DNA from: Hyaloraphidium curvatum SAG 235-1
Taxonomy: Eukaryota > Fungi > Monoblepharomycota
Direction: 5' to 3'
DNA: 64,000 nt
Assembly: GCA_025558095.1 (NCBI GenBank)
Contig: JAIVFI010000043.1
Span: 124,001-188,000 of the forward strand
Positions 1,472-51,072 of this stretch are shown one piece after another. Position 1 is the first letter of the stretch, and each line of letters begins with the position of its first letter. Under the pieces are notes generated by a model, which did not search any database, had not been told where the DNA came from, and was given only the letters and a program-made list of their open reading frames with translations. A program made the translations under genes and the position numbers.

Positions 1472-3175
1472 ATGCAGGCCGCGGAGGCGGAGCCGGCGCC
1501 GCCCGGTGCCGGCAAGCCGCCCGCGCGCGCCGGGTTCTTTGCGCGCGCGGACGTCTCGGCGGCGTTCCCGCTGCCGCCGCCGCCGCCCGGGCCGTGGGAC
1601 CGCCGCGCCGCCGCGCCGCCGCCGGAGCCGTGCACGCCGGGCACCGTGCTGGCGGCCCTCGCGCCGCACCGCGCCCTGCGCATGCTCGCGGCGAGCCACC
1701 TGGCGCTGTGGCTGCTGCCGATCACGCTGCCCCTGCGCTATGCGGTCGCGGGCGTGGTGGCCGCCGCTTTCGGCGCGTCCATGCTGGCGTTCGGAGCGGA
1801 CGCGTTCGGACCGTCGCAACTCGTCGGCGGCTACGTGCTGGTGGCGGTTTACTGTGTCGCCTTCCCATTCGTGTGGTTCGTGGGCCAGGTCGCGCTGATA
1901 CGCCAGCGGCTGCGGCTGCGGCACCCGAAGAACTTTCCAACCTGGGTTGCAGCCGCGCGCGAAAGGCTGGCGGGGGTCTTTCACCCGTGGAGCCGGCGCA
2001 ACATCATCCAGAGCGTGATTCTAGAGCCGTACGCCATCGTGCCGGCCTGGGCGCGCTGCGTCCGGGACAGCGACCCCTCCGAAACCGCCTTAGGCCACGT
2101 TGAAGGCGACCCGGAATGCACGTGCGGCGCCCCGCGGTGCTCCGCCGCGCTTCTGGACGCCGTGGCCCTCAGCTGGACTTTCGATCTGGCCGCGCGGGGC
2201 ACCCTGAACGCGCTCACGTGGCTCTTTATCGGTTGGACGCCGCTTTTCTCGCTGCCGGAGGTCTGGACGCACGAGTGGAGCATCTTCCTGGGTTCCTCCT
2301 ACTGTGGGTGGAGTGAGGGGTCGGAACCGGACCCCGCCGGCGTCGGCTGACGCTTACTTCACTGACGCTTACTTCACCGGGGGCGACAGGTCTCGTGATA
2401 GCCCTTTTTGCCGTCGAGGCGTTCGCGTACCCGACGGTGGACCATATGCTGCTGAGGCTGGAGGGCCGCGTCCGCCGGAGGCTTGTGCGCCGCGCCCTCG
2501 CCGCCTTCCTGGACCGTGCCCGCCGCGCCGTCCTCGAAAGGGAGCCGTTCTCCGCCCCGCACGAGCTCTGGGGATCGACCGAGGAGCCCTATATGCAGCT
2601 CCACGCCGAGCTGCGGCCGCGGTGGCAGCAAGCCCTGCAGTCCAACATCCTTCCGTTCGTCTATCCCATCTTCCTCACGCTGGCGATGATCCTCATGGCC
2701 GCCAGCATCGTGGGTCAATCGGGTCACCCCCCTGGCGCTGCCCTCATCCTCCGCCCCCGCCCAGATCATCGGCGCCTGCATTCCGGCGTGGATCCTCGCC
2801 ATCCTCGCCCAGTTCGCCTACAACCTCCTCCGCGATCTCTGGCACGCCGCCCTCGCCAACGCCGAGATCGCCGCCATCGGCGAACTCTACTCCTCCGCGC
2901 TCACCGAAACCCGGGACCTCCTCGTTGCCGCGAGCCCCGCGTGGGACCCACCGCCGCCGCCCCTGCTGGGCACGCACCTCGTTGCCCACGCGGCCGCGCT
3001 GGAACGGTACGAAGGCGAGGCCCGCGCGCAGAGGCGCCGGTTCCTGGGCGTGGCCGTCGGGTTCGGATCGTTCAGGGGGCTGCTGGTGTCGCTCGCCACC
3101 GTCGCGTTCGCGGCGTGGGGGCTGCTGCGGGGCTTTGGCGTCCGGGCCGGGCTGGAGACCGTGTGCGCGGGCTGA
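1472..3175 (+). CDS. Multi-pass membrane protein, GRL/DUF3537(7TMIC)-like lineage family, copy 1 (3 exons; introns about 2304-2389 and 2713-2764)
   Basis: Spliced product has several TM segments, a DPECTCGAPRC motif, CIPAW...LLRDLWHAALANAEI and the C-terminus RFLGVAVGFGSFRGLLVSLATVAFAAWGLLRGFGVRAGLETVCAG*. Clearly homologous to the genes at 14214-15805 and 24745-25212. Confidence 0.7.
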
Positions 3176-4997: not shown

Positions 4998-5469
4998 GGT
5001 GGGTTACGGAGCGGCGTACCGGTTGGGTTCGTGGGCGACACAGTTGACACAGTTGGATAGGGCAGGGACGTGCTGGACCCTGGGACGAGGGATTGCTGCG
5101 GCGTAACGGCGAGGTCATCATCTAGCGATCTCGGGGCGATTCCTGCAGACTACCTTCTTTGAAGGCCCCTATTGTTTGTTGAAGCAGTTGGAAAGGTGGG
5201 TCCGCTCCGAGGGGAGACAGCGGAACAGCGCCTTGGACAGATTGGATTCAAGGCAGGCACCACTTCCTGGAGCCCCAGAAAGGACACTCGGCCGTCAAAA
5301 CTGTCACGGTTTTGGCTCCGAGCCGATCAGCATTTCAGCTCAGGCCTCCGGATGCAAGCGCATTCCGATCTCAACTTGGGACCAGGACGCCCCCCCGGGG
5401 AGCGGACGGACATCGCCAGGCACTCGATCGGCTCAAGCTGGAGCACCGAGGCCAAGGATGGGACGCGGA

Positions 5470-7400
5470 CGAGGACGAGGACTCGGAGGCAAGCAGATGC
5501 TTTCATCGGGGTATAATCCAAATCAGACAGAGAATCAATGACAAAGATCTACGCGGCCGCCACCCTCTGCCGCCTCACTTTCCCGAACCACTTGGCCGGG
5601 TCGAACCTCCTCGCCCTGCGCTTCTCCTCGTGCACCGGTGCCGGCTCGGGCTCCGGCGCCGGAACGAGCACCGCGGCGACGGTCTCGACCGAAGCCATGC
5701 TCACGTCCGATCCCGCGCGCTCCACGCGGAGGGTGGCGTCGCTCTCGTCTCCCGACGACTCGGCGTCGGCAACGGCGTCCAGGGAGGCCAGGTAGGCCGG
5801 CAGGATGCGGGCGAGGTCAGCGTCGACGGCCTTGGCGGCGCGGCGGGCGTCGAACGCCGACGAGGGCAGCTTCGGGATCGCGGCGCCGGAGCGCACCGGT
5901 GCGCGCTCCACGGCCAGGTCCGCGAACCAGGGGTGCGCGAGCAGCGACTCGGCGGTGATCCTTCCCTCGTTGCGGGGGTCCAGCACCGCGGCGAGGAAGG
6001 CGTTGGCGGCCCCGCTGGCGCCCTCGACCGGCGCCGGCAGGCCCGAGGCGATCTCGGCCTGCAGCTCGAGCGGGTCCTCGTGGCGGAACGGGAAGTACCC
6101 CGTCAGCAGCCCGTGCGCGAGCACACCGACGGCGTGGAGGTCCGGGTGCCCGCCGCGGGGCGAGTACGGCCGGCGCTGGTTGACCAGGCGGAGCAGGCCG
6201 GGGCCGGCGTAGTTGATGCAGCCGACGGACTCGTCCAGCAGCGTGCGGTCGTCGAAGAAGGTGGCCAGGCCAAAGTCGATCAGGCTCAGGGTGCCCGTCG
6301 AGGCGTCCCAGAACACATTGTCCAGCTTCACGTCGCGGTGCAGCACGCCGTGGGCGTGGGAATGCCGCAGTGCCTCGAGCAGCTCGGCGACGATCACGCG
6401 GGCCTCGGCCTCGGGGAGCAGGCCGCCGGGCTGGTTGTTGACGTACGAAAACAGCTCCTCGCCGGGTGCGCGAGCCATCACGGCGTGCACGGCATCGCCG
6501 GAGCGGGCGACGTCCAGCAGCGGCGGGATGCTGCGGTGCGGCGGCAGGTGTGCGAGCACGCGGGCCTCGCGCAGGGCGAACAGCAGGTTGCGCGGGTTCG
6601 ACGTCGGCGTCGTCTTGGCCACCGCGGTGCCGCTCTTCCCCCTCGCCAGCCGCACCGCCGCGAACGCGCCCTCGCCGAGCACGCGGCCGGTCGCCCACTC
6701 GCCGGCGGCGCCGTGCAGGACGGGCCCGCTAAAATCCTCGGCGGGGGCGGCGGCCGGGGAGGGCGCGGGCAGCTTGGCCGCCGGCGCGCGCGCGTGGTCC
6801 TTCTCGTCGCAGAGCGTGCAGCTCGACGCGCGTTCCAAAATCACGGGCTTCATGGAGTCGATCATGTCGATGTTCGATGTACGGGTGGAGCGGACGAGCA
6901 ATGGCCGCGTTGTTATATCCGCTGCCGGATCAATGTCGAAACGACGGAACATCGTCGCAAGCGCTTACGCGGTTCCGGCCGGCCGGGGCTCTCACCAAAC
7001 ACCGAAACCAGCAAACCGATGCGACGACGCCGCCGCCTCCACGCCACGCCGGCACGCTCGTACTTGCCTCCAAAGATTATCCTGCGGTTCCGGGCGCGGA
7101 GCGTGCACGCGTTATGCAACCGGCGCTTCCGCTCGTGGTGGAGGCGACAGCGCTACTCGGGCGGATTTTCATTTTGCCGGGCGCATTCTCCCGCGGCTTC
7201 GAGGCTTCCGCCGCGGAAACCCAGGTTGTACCGCGGTGCGAACGACGGCCGCGGTGCCGTTCCGATGAGGAGTAAGAGGTGGGGGGCTCTCAAGGCGGAG
7301 GCGGGGCCGGACGGATTGGACCACGTGCTGGCGCGGAGGTGCTTCCCCACCGGGAGCGGACCGATCACTTGCGAACACTGATGAGTCAGCTCGAAGCGAA
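5470..7400 (-). repeat. Inverted segmental duplicate of 17900-19840 (kinase with UTRs and promoter)
   Basis: Near-identical kinase ORFs on opposite strands; 3' UTR (GCAAGCAGATGCTTTCATCGGG...) and promoter blocks also match. Ends approximate. Confidence 0.9.
5549..6865 (-). CDS. Ser/Thr protein kinase (CAMK-like), copy A
   Basis: GEGAFAAV, VAK, HRDVKLDN, DFG. Likely start MIDSMKP. Intronless. Confidence 0.85.
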   Translation of the reverse strand: MIDSMKPVILERASSCTLCDEKDHARAPAAKLPAPSPAAAPAEDFSGPVLHGAAGEWATGRVLGEGAFAAVRLARGKSGTAVAKTTPTSNPRNLLFALREARVLAHLPPHRSIPPLLDVARSGDAVHAVMARAPGEELFSYVNNQPGGLLPEAEARVIVAELLEALRHSHAHGVLHRDVKLDNVFWDASTGTLSLIDFGLATFFDDRTLLDESVGCINYAGPGLLRLVNQRRPYSPRGGHPDLHAVGVLAHGLLTGYFPFRHEDPLELQAEIASGLPAPVEGASGAANAFLAAVLDPRNEGRITAESLLAHPWFADLAVERAPVRSGAAIPKLPSSAFDARRAAKAVDADLARILPAYLASLDAVADAESSGDESDATLRVERAGSDVSMASVETVAAVLVPAPEPEPAPVHEEKRRARRFDPAKWFGKVRRQRVAAA

Positions 7401-7673
7401 GCCTGTGGATCCGAGCTCGTAGCCCGGTCCGTCCGCGGCCCTCGGGCGCTTTCATCGCATGCTGCGCCGGCCCCGCCATCCGCGTCCGCCGAAACCTCCT
7501 TCCGCAGGATGGAGCAAGCAAGGGGTGATCGGTCGGCGCAGTGGGGACAGGAGGTCGAAGCATGTCGGGACGGAGGCAATCAATCGCTAAATCGAATCGA
7601 CAAAGGTGTTCCCGCTCCCGGTCCTCCGTCCCCGATCGGACGTCCGTGATCCACCGGACCCACGCCGGCGAGA

Positions 7674-8905
7674 TCAGCACGTCTGCGACGGGGCGCGGGG
7701 GAAGGTGAAGGATGCGGCGGAGCGGCATGCCACCAGGAGGAGCTTGCCCTGGGCCTGTACGCCAACGTCCGATCAGCACCCAAGCAGGAAAAACAGGGCA
7801 GGATACCCACGTCGATCCCTATACAGCGCCCGTCCGAAGCCCGAAGGCGATACTGATTGGTGCTCGACGCGGAGGCGATCACCTGGAAGCGCTGCGTGGC
7901 CGGCCGGGTAGCCCTGTTTCGCGGCGCGATGGATCAGCCAGGGGCAGCGAAGGAGCCCGAATGGAGCTCACCAGTTCGGGGAGAGATCCCGAGCGGCGCG
8001 GTTGGCCTGGCACGTGGCAGCGTAGATGTAGGGGATCGCTGCGATCGGACCGTCAGCACCGCCCCCGCGGAACGCGGTGCGGGAAACCCACAGCCCTTGG
8101 TATCCACCGACAAGCACGTCTGCCCTCCCGACCTCGGACACCGCCGCAGGGTGATCGTGTCGCCCACGGCCACCCTGAGAGCCGGCGTGCCGTTGGTCCT
8201 GAAGGCCCGCCAGGTGGTGGCGCCCGAGGCGACGAGCGCGCACGCGCGGTCGCAGTCGTCGCGCCCAAAGCCTGCCGCGTGCGCGACGTCGTCCCGGCCT
8301 CGGTGGAGGTGGCCGGCGGCTCCGGGGCCGCCGTCGTCGGGATCGCCGCGGGGGAGGACGCCGTCTCGCTGGACGTCGACGGCGCCGGCGTCAGCGACGT
8401 GGAGGACGGGGTCTCTGCCTGCGAGGACGTGCTGGGCGTGGCCGTCGCGCTGGTGCTGGACGGGGTGAGGCTCGGCGTGGAGGTGCTGGGCGTTTCCGAG
8501 GTCTTCCGTCGAAAGGGATGGACGCCGCTAAGGAGGCCGCACGAAGGCGGCGCCGGATCGAAATCCCCACCGTGCTGGACGTCTGCGTCTTGCTGGTGGT
8601 CGATGACGTGAGGGTTTGCGAGGTGGTGGACGAGGTCCGGGTCTCGGAAGTCTGGAGGACAAGTTGGAACGGTCAGATCGGTGTACGGGTTCGTAGGCAG
8701 CGGATCGGGTTGGTCCCACCGTGCTGGGCGTCTGGGTCTCGCTGGTGGTCGATGATGTCAGCGTCAGCGTCGCGGTGGACGTGTCTGCGTCGCCGACGTC
8801 TGACGAGGAAAAAGTTGGATCAGTTCTTTTCGTGTATATTGTTCTGATCCTTCCCGGAACAGAGCTCCACCCACAGTGCTCGACGTGAGCGTTGCGCTGG
8901 TGGTG
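7674..8905 (-). pseudogene. 5'-truncated, frameshifted paralog of the S/T-stalk ricin-B-like lectin gene at 20395-24505
   Basis: Same C-terminal exons (RVAVGDTITLRRCPRSGGQTCLSVDTKG; YRLRASDGRCIGID). Only a few S/T exons, one of 80 nt (8720-8799, frame-breaking). No signal peptide or N-terminal domain seen. Confidence 0.7.
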
Positions 8906-12217: not shown

Positions 12218-12344
12218 CGAGTCAGGTAGGGATCGAACCTACGACCTTCTGCTAGCCGCTCCGACACCAGATTCGAATCGCAGGATACGAGTCAAGATGA
12301 TCAGAAGCCGTAGGCAGACGCTCTATCCACTGAGCTACAAACCC
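12218..12344 (-). tRNA. tRNA-Arg(ACG) with a 54-nt intron (12254-12307)
   Basis: GGGTTTG-TA-GCTC AGTGGATA GAGC-G-TCTGC CT ACG G[intron]A GCAGA-AGGTC-GTAGG TTCGATC CCTAC-CTGACTC-G; 73 nt after splicing; followed by CCA and a T-tract. Confidence 0.9.
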
Positions 12345-13082
12345 TTCCTTCTTGAGAAAGGATGCTCTATCCAGCGAGCGGGGCCATTTGAAGCACTTTG
12401 TCTCCGTCCGCAGCCGTACCCTCCACGATGTGATGTCGTTGTGCTTCCACTTTTGGAGTGAGCTGGGGGTCGGATCCGCAGGCGGGATGGGAGTGCAATG
12501 GTGCCCGGGACAGAGAGCTGGCCGGCCCGGCAGCTCCGCCCGGGGGCGCCAGGGAGGAAGTCCCCGGCCTCTACCAAGCCAGACACGGCACCATCAGCTT
12601 CATCAAGACGCCTCAGGGCGGCCGATTCGGGCAGGATGGCGGGCCCGGCGCGTGTGCTTCGTGCGCCGCCCTCGCGGCCTCGACGCGGGCTCCCCATCGT
12701 CCCGGCGGCGTCCCGAATCGCGCTTCTTTGCCCCCGAAATGCGCTTCTGGCCAGTAGCGTCGAGTTGGGGCCGCGGTCGGGACCGGAAAAGGCCGAAACG
12801 TCGCGCTGGTGAGGCTGGCCACACCCGGACCCGCAATTCCCGTTCCCGGGGGACGCGGGGCGGCCAAAGAGAGCCCGGGCGCGAACTGCGGGATCGTTTG
12901 CGACGCGTTGCGGGCCGCCGCGAGGGGTGTTTCGCGGCGGGCCGGTCGGACGCGCGCAAGTGCAGCGCCATTCGGACTATTCGGGGGGGGGGCCGGCTCC
13001 GCGGGCCTTGGCGGTCACAATGCCCCTCCCCGCCCTAGCGGATGATCTAAAGCCCTGTAGCTCAGTGGATTAGAGCACTTGC
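12236..13082 (+). repeat. 847-bp direct repeat, copy 1 (tRNA-Arg pair block)
   Basis: Appears identical to 16361-17207 (offset 4125; the ORF-track entries repeat exactly). Confidence 0.95.
13051..13082 (+). pseudogene. Truncated 5' half of tRNA-Arg(CCT) (positions 1-31)
   Basis: AGCCCTGTAGCTCAGTGGATTAGAGCACTTGC, then divergence exactly before the anticodon loop. Confidence 0.85.
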
Positions 13083-14213
13083 TGGATCACGGCCGAAGGC
13101 GTAGAGCCTCGCCCTGCGTCAGTACAGGTGTGCGAGCCATCGGCAGGGTTCAAGGCCCAGGGTTCTCGGATCCCGGTCCACGCACTCCGTCCCTGCCCAA
13201 TCCGTTCGGCAAATCATTCTCACTGATTGGTGCGGTGCGTGGTTTCGGGCCCTGTCGTCCATGGTCGGCCTCACGTGGCACGGAAGCATGGTTCACCTCG
13301 GCCAGCCGGGAGCCGGCCGTCCCTGGATGGAACTGGAAATTGCGGCGCCCAAATTGCCACCCTTGGCGGAAGCTTCGATGTGTTTTCGAAGCGAGAAGAC
13401 CGGTAAGGGACCGAGGACGAGCGGTCACTGCCTCTGCGCTGGGCCCGCCGAGTGGCCCTCCTGGCGCGCAATTCCGGGTAGCGTCGTCGCTCAATGCCCG
13501 CTTCCCGGAAGAAAACTGCTTCCCACGAACATGCAAAAGGGCGAAACACCAGAGGACCGCCGGGTTCAGTCCAGAGCGCGATGCGGCGGGCGGCCGAACC
13601 GGTCGACCCAGCGTGCCCGGCCATGCCATCGCGGCCTCTGCGCCTTGCCCCAGCGGTGTGGGAACTCCGTCCCCGCGGGATCGTGCCGCAAATGGACCGC
13701 GTCATTCACCTCAGGGGGCTGTTGCGGGCCCATGCGTGCAGGGTCGGCCTCAAGTGGCACGGAAACCGCCCAGGGGCCGGCAAGCGCGGGGCGCTCCTAG
13801 ACGGCACTGGACGCGAGAGCTACCCCTTGATGGTGTCGGCTGACACATTGGCTTCCACAGAGTTCAGAAAGTGCGTTCTCTACCATTGCAAGCCCCTGCT
13901 TGCCGAGGTGCAAGCTCCCGCCATTCTCGCCGGCCTGCTCAATGTCTTCCTTGACTTCCTTGATGAAACTGGAAACGGCTGCATCCAACCCACGGGCCTC
14001 TGTCAGCGCATCTAAGTGTGTCGAGTGCGCAAGGAGCTGTAGCGGACCGCGGACGACGTGATCCGGCGTTACTCCAGTTCTGGGAGCACCTAGCTGGCAA
14101 AATCGCCAGCCCGAAGGTTGTCGCTTCCGTGTGGAGACTGGATACATGAAGGTCGTCCCCGCCGCGGCCGTCCGCACGTCCGGAAGCTTCACGCACGAGC
14201 ATCCGAGCTCCCG

Positions 14214-15805
14214 TCACGCCGCCACAACGCCCGGGCACACCGTCGACACCGGGAAGCTGATGTTAAGCCCCCTGAAGATAGTGTACAGGCCGACCCCCAG
14301 TGTGAAGAGGGTGACCCCTGCCGTCCTCACGGCCGAAAAGTCCACGAGAAAGCCCATCCACTTGCCCCGCACGTCCTCGCCGACGAACGCGGTGATCAGG
14401 TCCGCGTGTCGCCGCGCCGAGGGCGTGCCGATGCTCAGCAGCTCCACCACTGTCGATGCATACAGGAGCCGGATCTGCTCGATGCTCGAGTTCCACAGCG
14501 CGAGCAGAGCGAGGTCCCGCAGTAGGACCAGGGTGAACTCGGCAAAGATGATGGGGACCCAAATGGGCACGCACGCCTCGCCGATGAGGTAGATGATGCC
14601 GCTGCCGACAAAGAGGACGAGGATGGTGGCGTATAGGGTGCGGGGATGGGAGCTCCGTGCGAGGAAGCTGCGCCAGGTGCGCGAGAGCTCGCGGTGCAGG
14701 ATCGCGTACTGCTCGGCGGTCAGGGGATCAGTGGGGACCGCCTCCCTGTCCACCACGTTGCGCTCGCGGTGCAGGAGGTCGCGCAGGACGAGCATCACGG
14801 CGCGGCTCCGCAGCCGCTTCGCGAGGTCCATCGGAGGGTGCGAGGCAATGCTCGACGGGTAGGGGGTGGAGATCTCCTGGAAGAAGAGGTTCATGCAGAA
14901 CACGACGATGATGAAGATGGCCCAGGGCGTCGTGTAGGTGACGGGGGCAAACGTGACGATGACCGTCCAGTGAATCAAAACGTTCCCGCAGACCTCAAAA
15001 GAGAGGGCCACCGTGCCAGTGATTAGCGCCTCGCGGGCCGCAGCGTCGGCGGAATCGCCCGCGCACGATTTGAGCGGGCACGGGCAGAGGTGGTCTTGCG
15101 GGTCGTGTGCGGTGAGGGCAGAAGGACCTGATTCGAGAAGCTGGGTCCACCGGGCGACGCCGGCGTAGGGATGGCCCGAAAAGTCGCCGGCGGGGGAGGT
15201 GTTGAGCATTTCTGGACGGCACCGGTACCGCGGGTCAACAGCGGAGGCGCGGCGGCAGACGGCAACCCACCGTCCATGCCCTTCTCCGCCTTCTTGTCAC
15301 GCACGGCGGCTACCATGAGCCCAAGGAAGGTGAAGAGAAGCGCCGCGGTGGCAAAGCCGACCTGCTTGTCCGGATACGGGTGCTCCGCCCGCGGGTTCAG
15401 CAGCCACAGCGCGACGATCATTAGCACGCCGGCCACGTTCAGCAGGGAGTTGATGAGGCTGAAGAGTCGCGAAAGCCGCTGCACGCCTAGCGAGTAGGCG
15501 AGCGCGGCCGCGGCTGTTTTGTACGGCGCCACCCCTGCGCGAAAGGCCGCGTCGCTGAGCGGCTGGGCGGCGCGCAGGCCGGCGGCGCGGTCGACGGTCG
15601 CGGTCGCAGTGAGCAACGAGTACGGAATGCGGGGCTCGTTGGGGAACAGCACGACCCATTCGCGGTCGCTGAAGTCGGGCCCGCCGCGGGACGCAGGCAG
15701 CAGCGTGGCCGAGAACAACGTCGCCGTCTGCGCGCCCCCGAGGCTAGGCGCTTCGGACGACAGCGAGTCGCGCGGCTCCATGCAGATGTGCTCGTCCTCC
15801 TTCAT
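14214..15805 (-). CDS. Multi-pass membrane protein, GRL/DUF3537(7TMIC)-like family, copy 2 (intact; intron 15212-15270), cargo of the tRNA-flanked insert
   Basis: A GTGGGT...TTGAC...CAG intron joins ORFs 15023-15928 and 14214-15209 in frame. HDPQDHLCPCPLKSC, CVPIW...LLRDLALLALWNSSI and the C-terminus KWMGFLVDFSAVRTAGVTLFTLGVGLYTIFRG...STVCP. Confidence 0.75.
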
Positions 15806-16360
15806 CGTTGGCTTTGTTGGGTGGGGGACGGACGGCGTTCTCTTCAGAAGACTCGAGCTACAGCCAGCCATGACGTAATCGGGAAACCTGGGAAAACCCC
15901 TCATCCTCGCGGCATAATCGCGAAGCATTCGGATGTGGACTTAAACATTCCAAAACATTGCGAGTCCGCCGGTGCCAGCGCCTTTGACTTTGCATGTCCG
16001 GCGTCGACTCCGCTGCTTCATCCGACAGCTCACCCGCGGCCCGTGCTTCCCGACCAGGTCCGGGTCGACGAGGTGTTGCTGCGTCACGCGGTCGGTTGGA
16101 GAGCAGTCGACTAGCAACAGTGTCAGATTTAGGATATCTCTGTAACAATCTCGACCAGCCCGTGCCGCTCCGCGCCGCACCGCGGCCGGTTCTCTCTTTT
16201 ACCCCCGCGTTGCAAGCCTCGCATGGGGGTGACATAATCGGGCGCAGCATTTGCATCCGAAAAGCAGGGAAAATGCCTTGCACACCCATTGCGAAGACCC
16301 TGTCTCCTGCGTAGCAGACGCTCCCTAAAGGGACCTATCCTCAAGGGCATGCCATTCCGC

Positions 16361-16469
16361 AACCTACGACCTTCTGCTAGCCGCTCCGACACCAGATTCG
16401 AATCGCAGGATACGAGTCAAGATGATCAGAAGCCGTAGGCAGACGCTCTATCCACTGAGCTACAAACCC
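16361..16469 (-). pseudogene. 3'-truncated tRNA-Arg(ACG) (stops in the T-loop after GGTT)
   Basis: Identical to 12236-12344 but lacks CGATCCCTACCTGACTCG. Confidence 0.85.
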
Positions 16470-17207
16470 TTCCTTCTTGAGAAAGGATGCTCTATCCAGC
16501 GAGCGGGGCCATTTGAAGCACTTTGTCTCCGTCCGCAGCCGTACCCTCCACGATGTGATGTCGTTGTGCTTCCACTTTTGGAGTGAGCTGGGGGTCGGAT
16601 CCGCAGGCGGGATGGGAGTGCAATGGTGCCCGGGACAGAGAGCTGGCCGGCCCGGCAGCTCCGCCCGGGGGCGCCAGGGAGGAAGTCCCCGGCCTCTACC
16701 AAGCCAGACACGGCACCATCAGCTTCATCAAGACGCCTCAGGGCGGCCGATTCGGGCAGGATGGCGGGCCCGGCGCGTGTGCTTCGTGCGCCGCCCTCGC
16801 GGCCTCGACGCGGGCTCCCCATCGTCCCGGCGGCGTCCCGAATCGCGCTTCTTTGCCCCCGAAATGCGCTTCTGGCCAGTAGCGTCGAGTTGGGGCCGCG
16901 GTCGGGACCGGAAAAGGCCGAAACGTCGCGCTGGTGAGGCTGGCCACACCCGGACCCGCAATTCCCGTTCCCGGGGGACGCGGGGCGGCCAAAGAGAGCC
17001 CGGGCGCGAACTGCGGGATCGTTTGCGACGCGTTGCGGGCCGCCGCGAGGGGTGTTTCGCGGCGGGCCGGTCGGACGCGCGCAAGTGCAGCGCCATTCGG
17101 ACTATTCGGGGGGGGGGCCGGCTCCGCGGGCCTTGGCGGTCACAATGCCCCTCCCCGCCCTAGCGGATGATCTAAAGCCCTGTAGCTCAGTGGATTAGAG
17201 CACTTGC
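16361..17207 (+). repeat. 847-bp direct repeat, copy 2
   Basis: Matches 12236-13082. Confidence 0.95.
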
Positions 17208-17249
17208 CTCCTAAGCAAGGGGTCCGAGGTTCGAGCCCTCGCTGGGTCG
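17176..17249 (+). tRNA. tRNA-Arg(CCT), intronless
   Basis: AGCCCTG-TA-GCTC AGTGGATTA GAGC-A-CTTGC CT CCT AA GCAAG-GGGTC-CGAGG TTCGAGC CCTCG-CTGGGTC-G. A1:C72 and T6:T67 mismatches; TTTT about 30 nt downstream. Confidence 0.8.
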
Positions 17250-17515
17250 TTCGCCTGATGTCGCCTCGAGCGACGTCTTTTGCTCCCCGGCGGGTCTGCG
17301 GCCCGCCTGCCTCCGTTCTGACCCTCCCGGACATCGGCTCGGCCTCGCCGGGCCTCATTTCCCGCCGGAAGCCCGCTGCGCCGGGGTCCTTCGGTCCGAG
17401 CCCTCGCTGGGTCGATCGCCTGATGTCGCCTCGAGCGACGTCTTTTGCTCCCCGGCGGGCCTGCGGCCCGCCTGCCTCCGTTCTGACCCTCCCGGACATC
17501 GGCTCGGCCTCGCCG
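17232..17515 (+). repeat. Two about 119-bp direct repeats (17232-17350 and 17397-17515) made of the tRNA-Arg(CCT) 3' end plus trailer
   Basis: CGAGCCCTCGCTGGGTCG...CATCGGCTCGGCCTCGCCG occurs twice with few substitutions. Confidence 0.9.
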
Positions 17516-18436
17516 TTGGTTTTGCTCCCAGTGGGGGCTGCCCGGGGCTGCGCCCCGGCCAGCTGGGGCGTCCTGCCAAGCAGCAGAAGGACCGCTTCCC
17601 AGCCTTCTTTTGCGGGATCGACCTCGGGCAGCGGATCGGCGCCATCTACGGCGACTTCGACCATCTACACGCCTCGCGCTAGTGACGCAGCGCCCTCACC
17701 GGCAGGCAAACGCTTGAGTGCGCCAGGGGTCCGTCAATCCGAGCCCGTTGCTCGGTAAATGCTTTTGCTTCGAATTGCTGATCGCCCGGAGCTCAAGGAC
17801 AGGATGCCCGCTGCCGCGATAACAATCAACATCGTCCGGGACTAAGGGGCTCGTGGCCGCGGACTGTGGGCCGTAACCCCTCGGATTGGACTCGGACATC
17901 ATTTCGAGCTGATTCATATGCCGGCAAGTGATCGGCGCGTTCCGAGCGGAAGCGGTACAGCGGTGGCACAGCTCAGCGCGTCTTGCTCCAATCCGTCTTC
18001 GGCGCGCGCCGCCTCAATCCCCGGATAGGAGGTAGCTTCATCCGAAGCCACCGCGCTGCCGCCTTACCCGCGGCAGATCCCCGGTTCCCGCGCGGGAAGC
18101 CCGGAAGCCGCGGGAGAATCGCCCCGGCAGAACGTAAATCCGCCCGCGTAGCGCTGTCGACTTGCCCCCGGGCGGGAGCCCCTGTTGCATAACGCGTGCA
18201 CGCCCCGCGCCCGGAACCGCAGGATAATCTTTGGAGGTACGTACGAGCGTGCAGGCTTGGCGTGGAGGCGGCGGCGTCACCGCATCGGTTTGCTGGTTTC
18301 GGTGTTTGGTGAGAGCCCCGGCCGGCCGGAACCGCGTAAGCGCTTGCGACGATGTTCCGTCGTTTCGACATTGATCCGGCACGGATATAACAACCGACCA
18401 CTGCTCCTCCACTCCACCCGTACATCGAACATCGAC

Positions 18437-19762
18437 ATGACCGACGCCATGAAGCCCGTGATTTTGGAACGCGCGTCGAGCTGCACGCTTTGCGACGAGA
18501 AGGACCACGCGCGCGCGCCGGCGGCCAAGCTGCCCGCGCCCTCCCCGGCCGCCGCCCCCGCCGAGGATTTTAGCGGGCCCGTCGTGCACGGCGCCGCCGG
18601 CGAGTGGGCGACCGGCCGCGTGCTCGGCGAGGGCGCGTTCGCGGCGGTGCGGCTGGCGAGGGGGAAGAGCGGCACCGCGGTGGCCAAGACGACGCCGACG
18701 TCGAACCCGCGCAACCTGCTGTTCGCCCTGCGCGAGGCCCGCGTGCTCGCACACCTGCCGCCGCACCGCAGCATCCCGCCGCTGCTGGACGTCGCCCGCT
18801 CCGGCGATGCCGTGCACGCCGTGATGGCTCGCGCTCCCGGCGAGGAGCTGTTTTCGTACGTCAACAACCAGCCCGGCGGCCTGCTCCCCGAGGCCGAGGC
18901 CCGCGTGATCGTCGCCGAGCTGCTCGAGGCACTGCGGCATTCCCACGCCCACGGCGTGCTGCACCGCGACGTGAAGCTGGACAATGTGTTCTGGGACGCC
19001 TCGACGGGCACCCTGAGCCTGATCGACTTTGGCCTCGCCACCTTCTTCGACGACCGCACGCTGCTGGACGAGTCCGTCGGCTGCATCAACTACGCCGGCC
19101 CCGGCCTGCTCCGCCTGGTCAACCAGCGCCGGCCGTACTCGCCCCGCGGCGGGCACCCGGACCTCCACGCCGTCGGCGTGCTCGCGCACGGGCTGCTGAC
19201 GGGGTACTTCCCGTTCCGCCACGAGGACCCGCTCGAGCTGCAGGCCGAGATCGCCGCGGGCCTGCCGGCGCCGGTCGAGGGCGCCAGCGGGGCCGCCAAC
19301 GCCTTCCTCGCCGCAGTGCTGGACCCCCGCAACGAGGGCAGGATCACCGCCGAATCGCTGCTCGCGCACCCCTGGCTCGCGGACCTGGCTGTGGAGCGCG
19401 CACCGATGCGCTCCGGCGTCACGATCCCGAAGCTGCCCTCGTCGGCGTTCGACGCCCGCCGCGCCGCCAAGGCCGTCGACGCCGACCTCGCCCGCATCCT
19501 GCCGGCCTACCTGGCCTCCCTGGACGCCGTTGCCGACGCCGAGTCGTCGGGTGACGAGAGCGACGCCACCCTCCGCGTGGAGCGCGCGGGATCGGACGTG
19601 AGCATGGCTTCGGTCGAGACCGCCGCCGCGGCGCTCGTTCCGGCGCAGGAGCCCGAGCCGGCGCCGGTGCACGCGCACGAGGACAAGCCGCGGAAGACGA
19701 AGCGGTTCGACCCGGCCAAGTGGTTCGGGAAAGTGAGGCGGCAGAGGGTGGCGGCCGCGTAG
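18437..19762 (+). CDS. Ser/Thr protein kinase (CAMK-like), copy B
   Basis: Same motifs as 5549-6865 and near-identical protein. Likely start MTDAMKP. Confidence 0.85.
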   Translation: MTDAMKPVILERASSCTLCDEKDHARAPAAKLPAPSPAAAPAEDFSGPVVHGAAGEWATGRVLGEGAFAAVRLARGKSGTAVAKTTPTSNPRNLLFALREARVLAHLPPHRSIPPLLDVARSGDAVHAVMARAPGEELFSYVNNQPGGLLPEAEARVIVAELLEALRHSHAHGVLHRDVKLDNVFWDASTGTLSLIDFGLATFFDDRTLLDESVGCINYAGPGLLRLVNQRRPYSPRGGHPDLHAVGVLAHGLLTGYFPFRHEDPLELQAEIAAGLPAPVEGASGAANAFLAAVLDPRNEGRITAESLLAHPWLADLAVERAPMRSGVTIPKLPSSAFDARRAAKAVDADLARILPAYLASLDAVADAESSGDESDATLRVERAGSDVSMASVETAAAALVPAQEPEPAPVHAHEDKPRKTKRFDPAKWFGKVRRQRVAAA

Positions 19763-20394
19763 ATCTCTGTCGTTGATTCTCTTTGTCTGATTTGGATTAT
19801 ACCCGATGAAAGCATCTGCTTGCCTTCGAGTCCGAGTCCTCTTCCGAGTCCGATATCTGGCCAGCTGGAGCTCTCTGACGACTTGCCACGAGACTAGTGG
19901 GACGAGCGAGGGGCCTCGCTGCCGCGGACGCACGCCGGGGCTGCGGCCATGCCCGCTGCATTGTAGATTATGGGCCTGATGGACCTGCTTGATTGCCTCA
20001 AGACGTGGTCCGGACACCGATGGATGACGGCTGGAGCCGAGGGAAGGCCGGGGTACTGTTCGGCACGGAGCGCAGCGAGCCCCCCGCGGAGAGCTGGACG
20101 GGGAATGGGGGTCTTCCCTCTTGCGTGTCCCTGCCCCCGTCTCGCCCCCTCCTGCCTCTCCTACTCCCCTGGGGAAAATGGGGCCGGCGAGGGAAAGGGG
20201 CCGGCGCGCGCCGAACCCCGCCCGGGGGCTGGTGACGCTGATGGCGAAAGCGCTGGCGCGAACCCGCCCACACCCCGCCCGAGGGGGACCGCCGCCGCGC
20301 CCCGCACCGCCGCACTCAGCAGCGCGGTGTGTTTGCGGCGGGCAGTGCGTGCGCGGCGAGAGGGCGGCGGGCAGCGCGCGCCGACACCGCCGCG

Positions 20395-23300
20395 ATGACG
20401 CTGCGCCGGTCAGCACTCGCCGCCGCGGTGCTGTTCGCGCTGCTGTTTGCGGCGCCCGTTGAAGCGCAGTTCGGCGTGTACACCGCCAGCGCGACGTTCA
20501 CCTCGGGCAACGTCAGCTCGTTCCGCTTCACCGCCGGCGTCTTCTGGGACACCTCGCTCAACCAGTTCACGCAGTTCTCGGCGACGTCCATGTTCATCAC
20601 AGAGCGCGGCCAGGCGGAGGCAAACTGGCTCAGCCAGCTGGACGGCTTCCGCGTCGAGAACCTGAGCGGCAACGGCCGCTGGCGGGCGACCTTCTCCAAC
20701 GTGCAGATGCTGACCGTGGCCGGGACAACGAGCTTCGAGCTCTTCATCCGCTTCGTCAACTCGCCGTCGGGCATGACCACCGGCACCGACATGACCACGG
20801 CGCTCTTCACAATCTCCTCGCTCACCTACAGCGGGCGCTGGGACGGCGCCTTTGTCGCCACAATCACCACCACGTCGCGCACCCAGACCTCGAGCACCTC
20901 GCGGACGCCCAGCACTTCCCTCACGCGGACCTCCTCCGCGACCACCTCGCGCACGCTCACCACCGCCACCGGGACCGCGACCCGCACCTCGGTGGGCCGC
21001 CCGAACAGGGATCCTTCGCGAAGAAGCTGATCCGCGGACCTCTCCCTGGCCTGCCAGACCTCGCTGACCCGGATCCCCACGAGCACCTCGCGGACGGCAA
21101 CCCCGTCGACCACAAGCCGGTCGCAGACGAGGACGGAGGTGGGATCCCGCCCGCTGCCGGCCTTGCCTGGTCCGATCTCATCCCTCCGCCCGGTCCGCAG
21201 ACCCCGACGCCGTCGACCACGTCGGCGACGGCCACCCCGTCGACAACGAGCAGGACCGCGACGTCGAGCACGGTGGGCTGCGGTGTGGAGAAGCGGATCA
21301 GTGCCTTGATCTGACCGCCGGCCGCCCGACAGACTTCGGAGACCCCGACCTCGTCCACCGCCTCGGAGACGCTGACCTCGACGACCGCCACCCAGACCGC
21401 GACCTCGAGCACGGTGCGCGTCCCCTCCGCCGTGCCTGCCACCCCCATGTGACCGTTCCCCGCCCTGCCAGACTTCGGAGACCCAAACCTCCTCCACCGC
21501 CTCGGAGACGCGCACCTCGTCCACGGCCAGCGAGACGCTCACGTCGAGCACGGCGAGCGAGACGCTCACCTCGTCCACGGCGAGCGAGACGAGGACGTCG
21601 AGCACGGTGGGCCCTGGGCGGCACCGCATGATCGGAGCCCGGGATTGACCGTCCACCCGTCTGCAGGCCACAGAGACGCGGACGTCGTCGACTGCTTCGC
21701 AGACGCTCACGTCGTCGACGGCAACTCAAACCCTCACTTCTTCGACGGCAACTCAAACCCTCACTTCTTCGACGGCAACCGAAACCCTCACTTCTTCGAC
21801 GGCAACCGAAACCCTCACTTCTTCGACCGCCACCGAGACGCTCACGTCGACCACCGCCACCCAAACGCAGACGTCCTCCACGGTCCGTCCTTTGCGCTCG
21901 CCGCCCGCCTCCGATCTGACGCCGCCCCGTCTCGGCAGACCTCAGCGACGCAGACACCCTCCACGAGCTCCAAGACCGCGACGACCAGCGAGACGCTGAC
22001 GTCCAGCACGGTAAGCCCGGGTCAGGCCCTCGGATCAGCTCGGGCTGATCATTGGCACGTTTGCGCGGCCAGACCTCGCGGACACCCACGACGCTGACCG
22101 TGTCGCAGACGCTGACCTCGTCGTCCACGAGCAGGACGCAGACTTCGAGCACGGTGGGTCTCCTGCGTCCTGTGCGGAAGCGTGGGCCCGGGGCTGACGA
22201 GCGCCGCGGGTCGGCAGACCTCCGCGACGCAGACCCCGTCGACGAGCTCCGAGACGGCCACGTCGTCCACCGCCACGCAGACGCTCACGTCGTCCACGGC
22301 GAGCCGGACGCTGACTTCGAGCTCGGTGGGCTTGAGCTGGCGATCGGATCTGTTGGAGCTGACCCTTGCCTGCCTTGCCAGACCTCGCGGACGCCGACAA
22401 CGCTGACAGAGTCGCAGACGCTGACTTCCACGACGACGAGCAAAAGCCAGACGTCGAGCACGGTGGGTATCAAGGGCCGTTTGGGGATCCGAATGCGGAT
22501 CTGACAAGGCGGCCCGACAGACTTCCGAGTCGCAGACTCCGTCCTCCACGTCCCAGACGCTCACGTCGTCCACGGCCACCCAGACGGCCACGTCCTCCAC
22601 CGCCAGTCAGACGCAGACTTCCAGCACGGTACGCGCCCGTGCCGGGTGGCCGGATCCTGCCCGTTCTGATCATTTGCGCGCCCGCCCAGACCTCCCGGAC
22701 GGCGACGACGCTCACCGTATCGCAGACGCTCACCTCATCCACCACGAGCAGGACGCAGACGTCCAGCACGGTGGATGCTCGTGAATGTGCCCGGTTCCGG
22801 CCTCGGATCTGACCTCCTGCCTGCCTTGGCAGACGTCCGAGTCGCAGACGCCTTCGACGACCTCGAAGACGGCCACCTCGTCCACCGCCAGCGAGACTCT
22901 CACCTCGACGACCGACACCCGGACGGCGACTTCCAGCACGGTGGGCCCGATCCGGATGGCGCGATCCGCTCGGAACAAACGTGACTTCCCCGCCCGACCA
23001 GACCTCGCGCACGCCGACGACATTGACGGCGTCGCAGACGCTCACTTCGTCGACGACCAGCCAATCGCAGACGTCCAGCACGGTGGGTTGTCGGCGGCTC
23101 GAGTGGACGCAGGCCCGGGTCTGACGCGCCCGGCAGACCTCGGATACCCAGACACCGTCGACCACGTCGCGGACACCCACGACGTCCAGCGCCAGCCGGA
23201 CGCCGACTTCGAGCACGGTGCGTCCCGCGGATCCGGCCGGAGGAGCCGTCTGACTTGCGCGTTGGCGTTCAGGCCTCGGAGACCCAGACCTTGTCCAGCA

Positions 23301-24505
23301 CGTCGCAGACCCTCACGCCGTCCAGCACAAGCGTGACGGCAACATCCGCGACGGCGACCGCGACTCCGTCCAGCACGAGTGCGACGGCTACGCCCAGCAC
23401 GGTACGGTCGTGCAGCGGCGCCACCTGACCTCGTACTGATCTGCCGCAGACGTCGCAGAGCCAGACTCTTTCGCAGACGCTCACGCCGTCCAGCACCAGC
23501 GAAACGGCGACCTCCTCGACGGAAACTGCGACGCCCTCCAGCACCAGCGCGACGGCGACTCCGTCCAGCACCAGCGAAACGGCCACCCCGAGCACGGTAG
23601 GATCGCGCCCGCCGCGGACCTGCGCCGCCTGACCATCCCTTCCAGACCTCAAGCACCAGCGGCACGGCCACGCGGACGCCCACCCCGTCGACCACTTCCG
23701 CGACGCCGCAGCCGACCACCTCCACCGAGACCGCGACGGCGACGCAGACGCGCCAGGCGCTGGGCCTGACGACGACGAGGGCGCCGACGACCCGCCGGAC
23801 GACGCGGAAGATCGTCACGACCACGACCAAGAGGTGCGTCCTTCCAGCTGCGAGCGAACCACGATCTAACCGCCCTCCCCGATCGCAGCCCCGCCGCCAC
23901 CGGCGTCTTCCTCCTCTCCATCGCCCCCCGCTCCCGCTCCCGCGCCCTCACCTCGGGCCGCGTCTCGTGCCCCAAGGACGACCGCGCCTGCGCCCTGGCA
24001 CGATCGGGTGCGACCCCCTGGCGCGCCTTCAGGACCAACGGCACGCCGGCGTTGAGGGTTGCCGTGGGGGATACGATCACCCTGCGGCGGTGTCCGAGGT
24101 CGGGAGGGCAGACGTGCTTGTCGGTGGATACCAAGGGCTGTGGGTTTCCCGCACCGCGTTCTGCGGGGACGGTGCTGACGGTCCGATCGCAGCGATTCCC
24201 TACATCTACGCCGCCACGTGCCAGGCCAACCGCGCCGCCCGGGATTTGTCTCCGAACTGGGCGACCAGGCCGGCAATGCAGCGTTTCCAGGTGATCGCGT
24301 CCACGTCAAGCGCCAGCCAGTACCGCCTGCGCGCATCGGACGGGCGGTGCATAGGCATCGACGTGGGTATCCTGCCGAGTTCTTCCTGCCTCGGTGCTGA
24401 TCGGACGTTGGCGTGCAGGCGCGGGGCAAGCTTCTCCTCGTGGCGTGCCGCTCCGGCTCCGCGTCGTCCTTCACCTTCCCCCGCGCGCCGTCTCAAACAT
24501 GCTAA
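20395..24505 (+). CDS. Secreted mucin-like protein: signal peptide, N-terminal beta-rich domain, long Ser/Thr stalk encoded by about 16 phase-0 micro-exons, C-terminal ricin-B-like (beta-trefoil) lectin domain; about 20 introns
   Basis: MTLRRSALAAAVLFALLFAAPVEA signal; repeated AGCACG|GTGGG...CTGAC...CAG|ACC exon-intron units; C-terminal GQTCLSVD, QRFQV, GRCIGID, LLLVAC. Confidence 0.7.
21700..21850 (+). repeat. 27-bp coding tandem repeat (ATQ/ETLTSST)
   Basis: GACGGCAACTCAAACCCTCACTTCTTC-like units, about 5 copies. Confidence 0.85.
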
Positions 24506-24744
24506 CTCTTCCAGCGCAAGGGCGCCGGGATCACGGAGAGCGGATCGGGGACGGGAGGACCGGGAGCGGGAATACCTTTGTCGATACGACGATTAGATTA
24601 CCTCCGTCCCACCATGCTCTTAGCGTCCCTTCCGGGTCTCATCTTCCCGTGTGGCTCCCGCTCCCGCGTGCCCCGCTTTTCGGAAGGTCCGCGAGGATGC
24701 CCGGCGCGACTTCGGGCCCTGCACTGCGGTCCGGCACGGACCGA

Positions 24745-25212
24745 TCATCCGGGGCAGAAGCTCTCCAGCGTCAGCACGAGCCCCGCCGACCTGAGCAGCG
24801 TCCACATCCCCAGGAACAGCGTGGCCATCCCCACCACCAGGCTCCTCAGGAACCCCCACCCGACCGCGAACCCGAACATCTCGGCCCGCAGCCCGTCCAC
24901 GTCCGCGAAGGACTCCAGCACCCTCCTCGATCCCGTCACCTCCCCCGCGAGGAGGCAGAGACGACGAGGGACGTCCAGAGGAAGAAGATGCCGCCGCCCA
25001 CTTCGGTTGCCATGAGCATGAAGGCGTGGGAGGCGGAGTAGCGCCCGTCGTTGCGGAAGCGAGCAGCGGGAAGTAGAAGCCTATCCAGCCGAGGAAGTAG
25101 GTCGCGAAGAAAGCGCGGGTCCGGATGGCGAGAAGTTGGGCAGGACCGCGGCCCACTCCGCCGCGGTGAAGTTCGGAGGGCCCGCGTGGCCGGCCGGATC
25201 GGACCCCGCCAT
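24745..25212 (-). pseudogene. Internally deleted, frameshifted GRL/7TMIC-like family copy 3
   Basis: N-terminal GPPNFTAAEWAAVLPN matches GPDFSDREWVVLFPN of copy 2. C-terminal AEMFGFAVGWGFLRSLVVGMATLFLGMWTLLRSAGLVLTLESFCPG*. Pieces lie in different frames and the middle is missing. Confidence 0.7.
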
Positions 25213-25395: not shown

Positions 25396-27491
25396 ATGGC
25401 GCCGAGCGGCGGTCCAAATGATGGCGAGGGGGGCGGAGCGCGCGATGCGGTCAATGGACGGGTGCCCGACGAGGACGAGCCGGACCACGACGAGCACGCG
25501 CCGGAGGGGCGCCATCCGGACGGGCAGCCCGGCGACGGCCACCGCGCGCGAAGAACGCAGCCCGTGCGGATCCAGACCGGCACCGCCGTGCCGCTGAGCC
25601 GCGCGGACTCGGCGACGTCGCTCGCGTCGTCGGCCTCGTCGCAGGTGTCGGGCATCTCGCCCTCGCCGATCGACAAGTGGCACCGCGCGCTGCTGTCGGC
25701 GCTGTCGCCCTCGGCGCACACAGACCCGTTCGAGGGGCTGCTGCGCGCCGGCCTGAGCGCCGAGACCTGCGTGCGCTACCAGTTCGACGCGCACACGGGC
25801 TCCTGGACGCGCAAGGAGGAAATGGCCATGGTGGAACCCGAGCCGTTCGCGCGGGGCTCGCTGCGAGAATGTTTCAGGGCGAAGAAGCTCTCCAACTGGG
25901 TCGGCGAGGGCGACTGGACGCGCGCCTCGAACCTGGTGCTGAAGCACTATCACTCGGTCGCCGAGGAGCCCGCCAACGCGGAGCTCGTCAGGGCCGACGT
26001 GCGCGTGCAGATGACCGCCAAGCTGCTGGCCCAGCACTTCAACAGGCTGCACCCGCCCAAGCAGATCGACATGCTGCAGACCTTCGTGCTCTCCTTCCCC
26101 GAGAGGCCGGGCGCGCCGCACTTTTGCGCGGAGCGGTTCATCGAGGGGCCCTACGCAAAGTACAACAGCAACGTCGGGTACGTCGGCGGGTCGCCGACGG
26201 ACGACCACGTGCGCTCGACGCCCCAGGCCTTTTCGCACTGGACCTTCGAGGGCACCTTTGGCCGGCAGATGTGTGCGTGCCCCGCCCCGCGTTCTCTGCT
26301 TGCTTCCCCGGCTAATCCCGTCCGTGGGCACCGCCAGGCGTCGACGTGCAGGGCGTCGACGACCTCTTCACCGACCCCCAGCTGCACACGTACCCCGACG
26401 ACCCCGAAACTAGCGGCGGCGAGGGCGACCTCGGCATCATGGGCTACGCGCTCTTTTTCCGCACGCACAGGTGCAACGCCGTGTGCCGCATGCTCGGCCT
26501 GCAGGAGTTCGAGCGGCCGCCTCCCTCGTTGCTTTCAAACGGAACCGGCGGCTCGTCCGCCTCGGAACCCGAGTTTGCGTTCCCCCCCATCACGCCCGAC
26601 TCGACCGTCCCCCGCGCAGCCGGCACCGTCACCCTAGCCGCCATCACCCCGCGCAAGCAGCGCTTCGAATCCCTGTACCGCCGGCCCTCCCTGCAGCCGC
26701 CCACCTCGCTCCCCCGCCGGCGCTCCCTGGACCCCGCCGCCGACGGCGTCCCGCGCCGCCGCTCTGCCGCACCCAGGCCGGAGGACGCCGCGCAGCTGGG
26801 CAGCATCACCGCGCTCGCCCACCGCACCCTGGCGCGGGCGCACCTCGTCCCGGGGAAGCTCCCCGCGTTCTCCTCCGAGCACGCGGCGGATCCCGACGGG
26901 GCGGCGCTGTTCCACTACGCCGCCGCGGCGAGGATGGGCGACGCCACGTCGGCGTGGATGCTCGCGGCCGCGCACCGCCCCGACGCCCCTTCGGCGCGTT
27001 CCGCCGAGCTGGACGGGCTGGACGGCGCGGATCCCTTGCGGCTGCCGCACGTCCCTCCCGCGCAGCGCTCGGACGGGGAGGCGCTCCGCTGGGCCCGGAC
27101 GGCGGGCGAGAACGGGTCCGTGCCGGGCTGTCTCGCCGCCGCCGACGCGCTCCCCTCGCCCCCGGACCGGCTGCCCTGGCTCGAGCGCGCGCTGGGCATC
27201 CTCGCGGACCGCCGCGCGCTCCTGTCGCTCCCGGAGGACGCGGCCGGGTTCCCCGGGTTCCACGGGCGCCGCCTGCTCGCCGACCTGGCCGAGGCCGAGT
27301 CGCGGTACCCCTACTCCCCGCGGTGCGCCGAGGGCGCGGAGGAGTGGGACCTGTGCGCGGCGATCGCGGGGTGCAAGGAGGGCGAGGAGGCGGCCGAGTG
27401 GTACGAGCGGGCGGCGGAGGGGTGCGTCGAGTGCGGGATGGGGAGGAGGGCGGAGGGGTATTACAGGAGGGCGGAAAAGGCGAGGGGGTGA
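25396..27491 (+). CDS. Alpha-kinase, eEF2 kinase-like, with C-terminal SEL1-like helical region; intron 26273-26337
   Basis: PFARGSLRECF, VLKHY, ERFIEGPYAKYNSNVG, TPQAFSHWTFE, CVDVQGVDDLFTDPQLH, GEGDLG...FFRTHRCNAVC. Confidence 0.85.
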
Positions 27492-50413: not shown

Positions 50414-51072
50414 CGCGAGCAGGATCGACGACGGATGTGGGCGACGATCGGGCGATCACTTCCGGCGCACCCGCGCAGCAGCCGCAATCAGCCGGACTGC
50501 GTGCTCGAGAGCGCCTAGTTCGGCGCATGGGCGGTGGGACAAAAAGAGCCGGGCGCGGTATCTCGTCGATCCTGCAACTCAGACTGGCCGCGAAATTGCC
50601 CTCCACTCCAAGCGGGTCTGGTGTTGATAACCGCGCGCCATACTCACAATGCCCAGCCGTGAGACCTAGATCGCTCCACGGTGGCTTCACCCGTGATGCG
50701 ATGATGCGATCCACACCGACCGTCCGACATTCCTCGGGTTTGGGTTGCCGTCGGCGGCGAGTCGGAGACCCGACAGCGGCAACCCGACACCGCCCGCAAC
50801 ACAGCAATCGCCGTTTCGCAGCTGATTGCCGGCTCGCTCCGCACGTCTTCCGGAGTGGGCGGATCACCCATTGATCGCCAGTCCGTCCGACTCCCCGGCC
50901 TGCGATTCGGCCTGCGATTCGCTCCGCTTGGCGCATCGCCAAAACCGATGCCGTAGTGGCAAGTGTCGCCGTTTGCCGCCGTCGCCCGATCGGGCCGAGC
51001 CCATCAGCCGGCCGTCCCGACCTGCCGCATCGCCCATCGCGCCTCGCCGCAAACTCGCCGCCCAACACCGCG

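Follow-up and report, generated by a model that had tools for sequence, protein, structure and literature searches.

What places an intact native gene between two broken tRNA genes? The question arises at a locus of the pond fungus Hyaloraphidium curvatum SAG 235-1, within a 64,000-nucleotide stretch of contig JAIVFI010000043.1 (positions 124,001 to 188,000 of the forward strand, assembly GCA_025558095.1; hereafter the window, whose numbering we use). Here an 847-bp direct repeat, broken inside two tRNA-Arg genes, encloses a 3278-bp insert carrying a receptor-like gene. The original prediction read this as a tRNA-anchored cargo island and offered two origins, Campbell-type integration of a circle or break-induced capture at RNA polymerase III (Pol III) genes. 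Our best reading is that the Arg locus exemplifies something that happens throughout this genome, and that it is not a bacterial-style integrating island.

The repeat is exact. Its copies are spaced 4125 bp apart, identity stops on both sides, and they are the only two copies in the 31.9-Mb assembly (Table 1). The two tRNA-Arg genes are divergent and share their upstream DNA, and both repeat ends run on outward into tRNA sequence. In the left copy, the inner end falls in Arg(CCT), directly after the 5' strand of the anticodon stem; in the right copy, it falls within the T-loop of Arg(ACG). Because tRNA genes make up only about 0.01 to 0.02% of the genome, repeat ends inside them are not due to chance. 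The 847-bp stretch between the two genes was duplicated with both ends intragenic, and 3278 bp of unrelated native DNA stands at the new joint. The 100% identity of the copies supports a duplication event that is probably recent. The identical broken repeats, the position of each break, the recency of the event, and the retention of one intact copy of each tRNA gene (called by Rfam and ARAGORN) were all foreseen by the original prediction.

Repeats that end within a tRNA gene recur across this genome. We examined 30 tRNA loci with 1.5 kb on each side, in the H. curvatum genome alone, and found a repeat ending inside the gene at 14 of them, compared to 38/570 and 4/86 control intervals. Two of the 14, loci L046 and L039, proved to be decayed whole paralogues and were dropped from the broken class, and the other 12 hold truncated copies (Fisher P 1e-5). 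Loci with truncated copies reach 14/30 when farther copies are included. In bins of one gene length, repeat ends peaked in the gene itself (14 loci versus 4 and 5 in the adjoining bins), and no intact whole-gene local duplicate was seen at the 30 loci. The nonrandom involvement of tRNA genes is upheld, and the proposed check for further tRNA-broken repeats gave a positive answer at these loci. Such a genome-wide excess of breakpoints at tRNA genes is what marks a fragile-site duplication, and H. curvatum DNA seems to break repeatedly inside tRNA genes.

The scars vary in nearly every respect. Copies are direct or inverted and 75 to 100% identical, and the gaps between them range from 0 bp, by way of ~32 and ~100 bp, up to the 3278 bp of the Arg locus. 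Breaks fall at positions 22, 22, 27, 32, 32, 40, 41, 44, 46, 47, 55, and 63, with three more in introns. The anticodon-loop and T-loop breaks at the Arg locus are two draws from this broad distribution. Direct copies obey a rule: the 5' part of the gene is repeated upstream together with its upstream flank, and the 3' part is repeated downstream together with its trailer. The 847-bp repeat fits this rule for both Arg genes at once, since the genes are divergent and their upstream DNA is common. The interval from the A box to the B box contains 15 of the 17 breaks, where 9.8 would be expected (P ~0.007, post hoc). This bias fits exposed DNA between TFIIIC contacts, or selection against halves that keep the whole promoter, and it fits a nuclease too.

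Our count is a lower bound. Two loci without a local repeat were searched genome-wide. For one, on contig C27 and identified by eye as Gly-TCC, an inverted copy of the 5' part was found at a distance of 16 kb and a repeat of the 3' part at 86 kb; the other, Leu-TAA, has no half elsewhere in the genome. Judging from coordinates only, C21 has an intact Leu gene with a Leu 5' motif in matching orientation 5080 bp upstream of it. Neither reverse transcriptase (RT) genes nor other seven-transmembrane genes cluster at tRNA genes; of ~150 RT matches in the genome, some lie within 2 kb of just 1/31 tRNA genes.

Several smaller observations were made at tRNA loci. Directly upstream of the intact Arg(ACG) gene, a tRNA-like 5' half (12345-12385, minus strand; copy at ~16470-16510) has a D arm, a 5-bp anticodon stem, and TCA in the loop, and is possibly an old scar of like kind. 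The acceptor stem of the intact Arg(CCT) gene has two mismatches, A1:C72 and T6:T67; 5' tRNA editing is known in H. curvatum mitochondria. Two tRNA-Lys loci (C26 and C40) share ~780 bp at 82%, partly ORF-like (L032:2310-3087 and L036:332-1106), and the Glu(CTC) and Ile(TAT) loci have 135 bp in common. Long tandem arrays are seeded by the 3' ends of tRNA-Ser(CGA) (L048:1575-3112, ~148-bp unit) and tRNA-Leu(CAG) (L049:254-1530). Short tRNA-anchored tandem units (L023, L025, L027, L028, L038, and L048) cluster at 135 to 170 bp, near nucleosome or Okazaki-fragment size, and several of them have small indels in the tRNA-derived part and a nearly unchanged flank.

The explanation we favor, with a probability of roughly 0.6, is that the Arg locus is a recent repair scar: a replication fork broke inside low-copy tRNA genes, the adjacent DNA was duplicated with a captured fragment, and selection kept an intact gene. 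From the yeast literature, low-copy tRNA genes under heavy Pol III load would stall or break forks in the gene body. Both neighboring Arg genes would have been broken, for example where a small bubble lost its two forks, or a single break would have been followed by template switching back to the other gene. The stretch between the breaks would then be copied twice, with a loose chromosomal fragment joined or copied in at the joint, and the repair itself would be break-induced or microhomology-mediated synthesis duplicating adjacent DNA. Each anticodon has about one gene in this genome, so keeping one intact copy is what selection demands. Duplications leaving one whole gene per anticodon would survive and deletions would not, and such selection can give the locus its att-like look without an integrase. 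The outcome would be passive relocation of genes to tRNA loci; the programmed, switchable shuffling system that had been proposed is not supported.

Yeast offers a precedent for each of these steps. There, breakpoints and gene-gain sites show about threefold enrichment for tRNA genes (PMC2675101), segmental duplications from broken forks have junctions at and inside tRNA genes (PMC2518615), and broken re-replication bubbles give tandem direct duplications (PMC3536649). As in H. curvatum, ends and gained genes lie at tRNA genes, no dedicated integrase is involved, and replication-based repair fits (break-induced and microhomology/microsatellite-induced replication, BIR/MMIR; PMC2675101 and PMC2518615). 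However, ends here lie inside gene bodies, at 14 or more of 30 loci, with about one gene per anticodon and without Ty-like long terminal repeats (LTRs) as a recombination substrate, and the apparent density is much higher. The Arg locus also has both ends in tRNA genes around a 3.3-kb gene-bearing insert. Yeast templated insertions (PMC11724301) and re-replication duplications (PMC3536649) likewise show a directly duplicated stretch whose joint contains foreign chromosomal DNA, but the insert here exceeds those in size and carries an intact gene that is expressed, and its donor does not survive in the assembly. Of the two origins in the original prediction, break-induced capture at Pol III genes is the one our data support.

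Several points weigh against a repair scar. Its weak point is the donor: the proposed search for the source of 13083-16360 found no near-identical sequence across the assembly, the closest paralogue being 75% identical in nucleotides. Template copying is thus not demonstrated (the fragment must have moved, or else its donor is lost or unassembled), and junction microhomology is unreadable without the donor. The frequency of tRNA scars seems far above the yeast expectation, and an extra cause may be at work. Loss of ends by decay in old duplicates can blur the lower-identity cases, and the base is 30 loci with short flanks in one genome serving as its own baseline.

We examined the insert for signs of its origin. 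Neither terminal inverted repeats (TIRs) nor terminal direct repeats were found in it, both ends lack poly(A), and its ORFs had no match in Pfam, in keeping with the prediction that it carries no integrase or TIR. The left third is noncoding and consists of one and a half decayed copies (~68%) of the flank upstream of tRNA-Ile(AAT) on contig C1. A coding reading of this arm was rejected because the copies share no conserved frame. Of the other copies of this flank, those at C1:74.9k and C1:174.6k include the first 46 nt of the Ile gene, and one on C22, adjoining a tRNA-Ser gene, includes ~13 nt of it; the copy in the insert has no tRNA sequence. All seven matches to the core motif of this flank (7/7) lie within ~2.3 kb of a tRNA gene or half. 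Fragments and flanks are exchanged between tRNA loci, and the insert joins remnants of a further tRNA locus to a native gene that is expressed.

The right two thirds of the insert holds that gene, which has two exons on the minus strand. An RNA-type contig covers 14077-15527 and skips 15212-15270, showing that the gene is spliced and transcribed; the public record of its protein begins at a later Met than the start we predict. The gene belongs to a family with more than 100 relatives in the genome (133 matched stretches), and partial members lie elsewhere in the window near 2690-3172 and 24748-25080. Its closest paralogue, on C39, is 75% identical in DNA, with differences by codon position of 50/39/112. 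As the differences fall mostly at third positions, the gene is under constraint, and at 75% identity, no assembled locus can be its recent source.

The family assignment comes from structure prediction. Searched exon by exon, the insert protein gave no family and no relative outside H. curvatum in Pfam and word searches, and only weak leads in an Atlas search (ciliate membrane proteins, TMEM39, and DUF3537). The fold was predicted on the database paralogue P0002, 76 to 78% identical. The top 8 of 48,161 chains were all insect odorant or gustatory receptors (OR/GR), with Z scores of 9.7 to 11.7 and the next at 7.5, over alignments of ~300 residues at a root mean square deviation of 5 to 6. The model is weak (pLDDT 61) and a Z below 13 calls for caution with helical proteins, so the support lies in the clean ranking; Foldseek on the same model gave no match at E<=0.001. 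In the motif of the seventh transmembrane segment (TM7), (T/S)Yhhhhh(Q/K/E)(F/L/M), the insert gene keeps only the Tyr, and Spizellomyces GRLs keep the motif to the same degree, at one position (PMC7746228). The OR/GR fold predicted for the paralogue likens the gene to the GRL/7TMIC proteins of unicellular eukaryotes, although single GRLs were reported for two Spizellomyces species (PMC7746228) and more than 100 members are found here. We consider the GRL-like label fair, as a prediction with moderate support. The original prediction of an intact GRL-like gene is upheld to that extent.

Table 1. Coordinates of the features at the tRNA-Arg locus, in window numbering.
Feature	Position	Strand	Evidence or remark
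tRNA-Arg(ACG), intact, ~54-nt intron	12218-12344	-	Rfam 49.7 bits; ARAGORN with introns enabled (-i)
Repeat copy 1, 847 bp: ACG gene nt 1-55, 706-bp spacer, 5' part of Arg(CCT)	12236-13082	+	
tRNA-Arg(CCT) 5' half, cut at canonical 31/32; A box kept, no B box	13051-13082	+	
Insert, 3278 bp, single copy in assembly, GC similar to flanks, no TIR or terminal repeat	13083-16360	.	
Decayed (~68%) copy of tRNA-Ile(AAT) upstream flank from contig C1, noncoding	13150-13600 (ends approximate)	+	
Second partial copy of the Ile(AAT) upstream-flank repeat, more decayed	13650-13920 (ends approximate)	+	
Predicted 7TMIC (GRL-like) gene, exon 2, to stop codon	14214-15211	-	
Intron, 59 nt, GT..AG, at about the same place as in closest paralogue	15212-15270	-	Joint in RNA-type contig
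Predicted 7TMIC gene, coding exon 1	15271-15805	-	tblastn of P0002; start placed by the paralogue's first residue
Repeat copy 2, 847 bp, 100% identical	16361-17207	+	
tRNA-Arg(ACG), 3'-truncated, cut 55/56 in T-loop, B box broken	16361-16469	-	
tRNA-Arg(CCT), intact	17176-17249	+	Rfam 55.8 bits
Older separate scar at Arg(CCT): 17219-17350 (3' part from nt 44 plus trailer) repeated at 17383-17515	17219-17515	+	95% identical, 32 bp between

An unlikely alternative, though one that would yield the exact arrangement observed, is that the fragment between the tRNA genes was released or copied and was ligated with a foreign fragment into a 4125-bp circle that re-entered by homologous recombination over the 847 bp, with no integrase. 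This is the same lesion as in the repair scar with another topology, and it would explain the missing donor if the cargo had been excised from its former site. However, the 847-bp sequence is confined to this locus, so the circle would have been born locally and more steps are needed, and circles cannot produce the inverted scars of other tRNA loci. The reverse event, excision of the 4125-bp circle by homologous recombination, is geometrically possible. All junctions of both the circle and the empty site already exist in the chromosome, so short reads cannot reveal either, and only reads longer than 847 bp can.

We are similarly doubtful that tRNA genes are cut, and so become landing pads for cargo, by a dedicated trans-acting enzyme (a nuclease, an RNA-guided Fanzor, or a divergent recombinase), with the island system as the strong form of this idea. 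The very high share of tRNA genes affected, the concentration of breaks between the A and B boxes, and the travel of fragments between tRNA loci would all suit such an enzyme. Yet the cut site is not fixed, many isotypes and both orientations are involved, and the inter-box bias would also follow if the DNA between the TFIIIC-bound boxes were exposed, or if halves with a whole promoter were selected against. On inspection, the scar junctions share no termini or motif, and the 1.5-kb tRNA flanks share no protein family, bar one ORF-like match between two Lys loci. PF00589, the search made for a trans-acting tyrosine recombinase, had 0 matches genome-wide, with 14/14 controls detected. A Crypton (DUF3504) search was also blank, but no control was detected either, so it is uninformative on divergent tyrosine recombinases. 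It is improbable, in our view, that H. curvatum possesses an active, hitherto undescribed enzyme system whose cuts between the A and B boxes make tRNA genes the landing pads through which native genes, such as receptor-channels, are moved and possibly excised again.

Prokaryotic genomic islands and prophages integrate at tRNA genes through a tyrosine integrase, leaving attL and attR, with crossovers known to occur in either the anticodon loop or the T-loop. The Arg locus resembles them in having cargo between direct repeats that hold part of a tRNA gene, with one gene intact. It differs in that the repeat is 847 bp over two genes and not a short core, no integrase was found, break positions vary across loci, and the cargo is native (GC like the flanks, single copy, family of more than 100). 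With breaks scattered, copies inverted, no fixed core, and no PF00589 match, Campbell-type att/integrase integration is not supported.

Known eukaryotic elements were considered and rejected as well. Dada DNA transposons also insert inside tRNA genes and have no long TIRs, but they combine a DDE transposase with a 6-7-bp target duplication at a fixed site in high-copy targets (PMC3706591), none of which is found at this locus; no genome-wide search for a Dada transposase was made. A target-specific non-LTR or LTR retroelement is contradicted by an insert without RT/endonuclease, gag-pol, poly(A), TG..CA ends, or a short outer target duplication. An LTR element with 847-bp LTRs fails because both ends run into tRNA genes and there is no gag/pol. 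A Starship would have a DUF3435 captain as its first gene and measure tens of kb, compared to 3.3 kb here, and the insert has no Pfam match; no genome-wide DUF3435 search was made.

Could the locus be an artefact, in which the assembly used the tRNA pair to fuse two haplotypes or to attach misplaced sequence? We think this very unlikely. The repeats are 100% identical, and diploidy is reported for the phylum (PMC9457484). The proposed check with reads across the locus came out in part: a short-read contig (12925-13142) bridges 13082/13083 with zero mismatches and a read-derived contig crosses 12235/12236 with just 29 letters outside, but 16360/16361 and 17207/17208 have no coverage in the public short-read contigs (of low depth), and no read-derived piece there spans the whole locus. 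The read set may stem from the same culture as the assembly. Against an artefact stand the bridged junction, the unique and expressed insert, and the 75 to 99% identity of the sister scars, which is not a product of misassembly.

Least probable of all is RT-mediated capture, in which a break at the tRNA pair was filled with cDNA from a partly spliced or read-through transcript, leaving the 847 bp as a target duplication of unusual size: the insert gene does precisely lack the 3' intron of its closest paralogue (window 14354 versus L014:8416-8476), the genome has its many RT matches, and this route was proposed for yeast gene gains adjoining tRNA genes (PMC2675101), but the insert retains the 5' intron, ~550 bp upstream of the start, and ~1 kb past the transcript's seen 3' end, neither end has poly(A), and with 25% divergence between gene and paralogue and many family members intronless, the intron difference is maybe far older than the insertion.

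Other duplications are present in the window. An inverted duplication around the tRNA pair includes a protein kinase gene (5450-7268 and 18038-19862, 94.5%) and a Thr/Ser-rich mucin-like gene (7559-8800 and ~22500-24618) with changed gene order; it ends outside the tRNA genes. A direct duplication of ~1 kb (39412-40481 and 49982-50951, 89-92%) has its copies 10.5 kb apart. An alpha-kinase (eEF2K-like) domain, PF02816, lies at 25396-26637.

As a single locus, the Arg scar would be a modest curiosity, and the genome-wide pattern is the main interest. That tRNA genes mark breakpoints and gene gains is known statistically from yeast, where individual events are rarely readable, and a limited full-text literature search found no description of the intragenic tRNA-scar pattern in any fungus. 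A GRL/7TMIC-like family of more than 100 genes in a fungus is a side result worth its own study. In H. curvatum, nearly half of the examined tRNA genes are scarred inside the gene; the scars are of several ages and run in either orientation, and a very recent one contains an intact gene that is expressed. With this pattern, the question of how tRNA genes bring about gene gain can be put to a direct test, base by base, in an organism that is available in culture.

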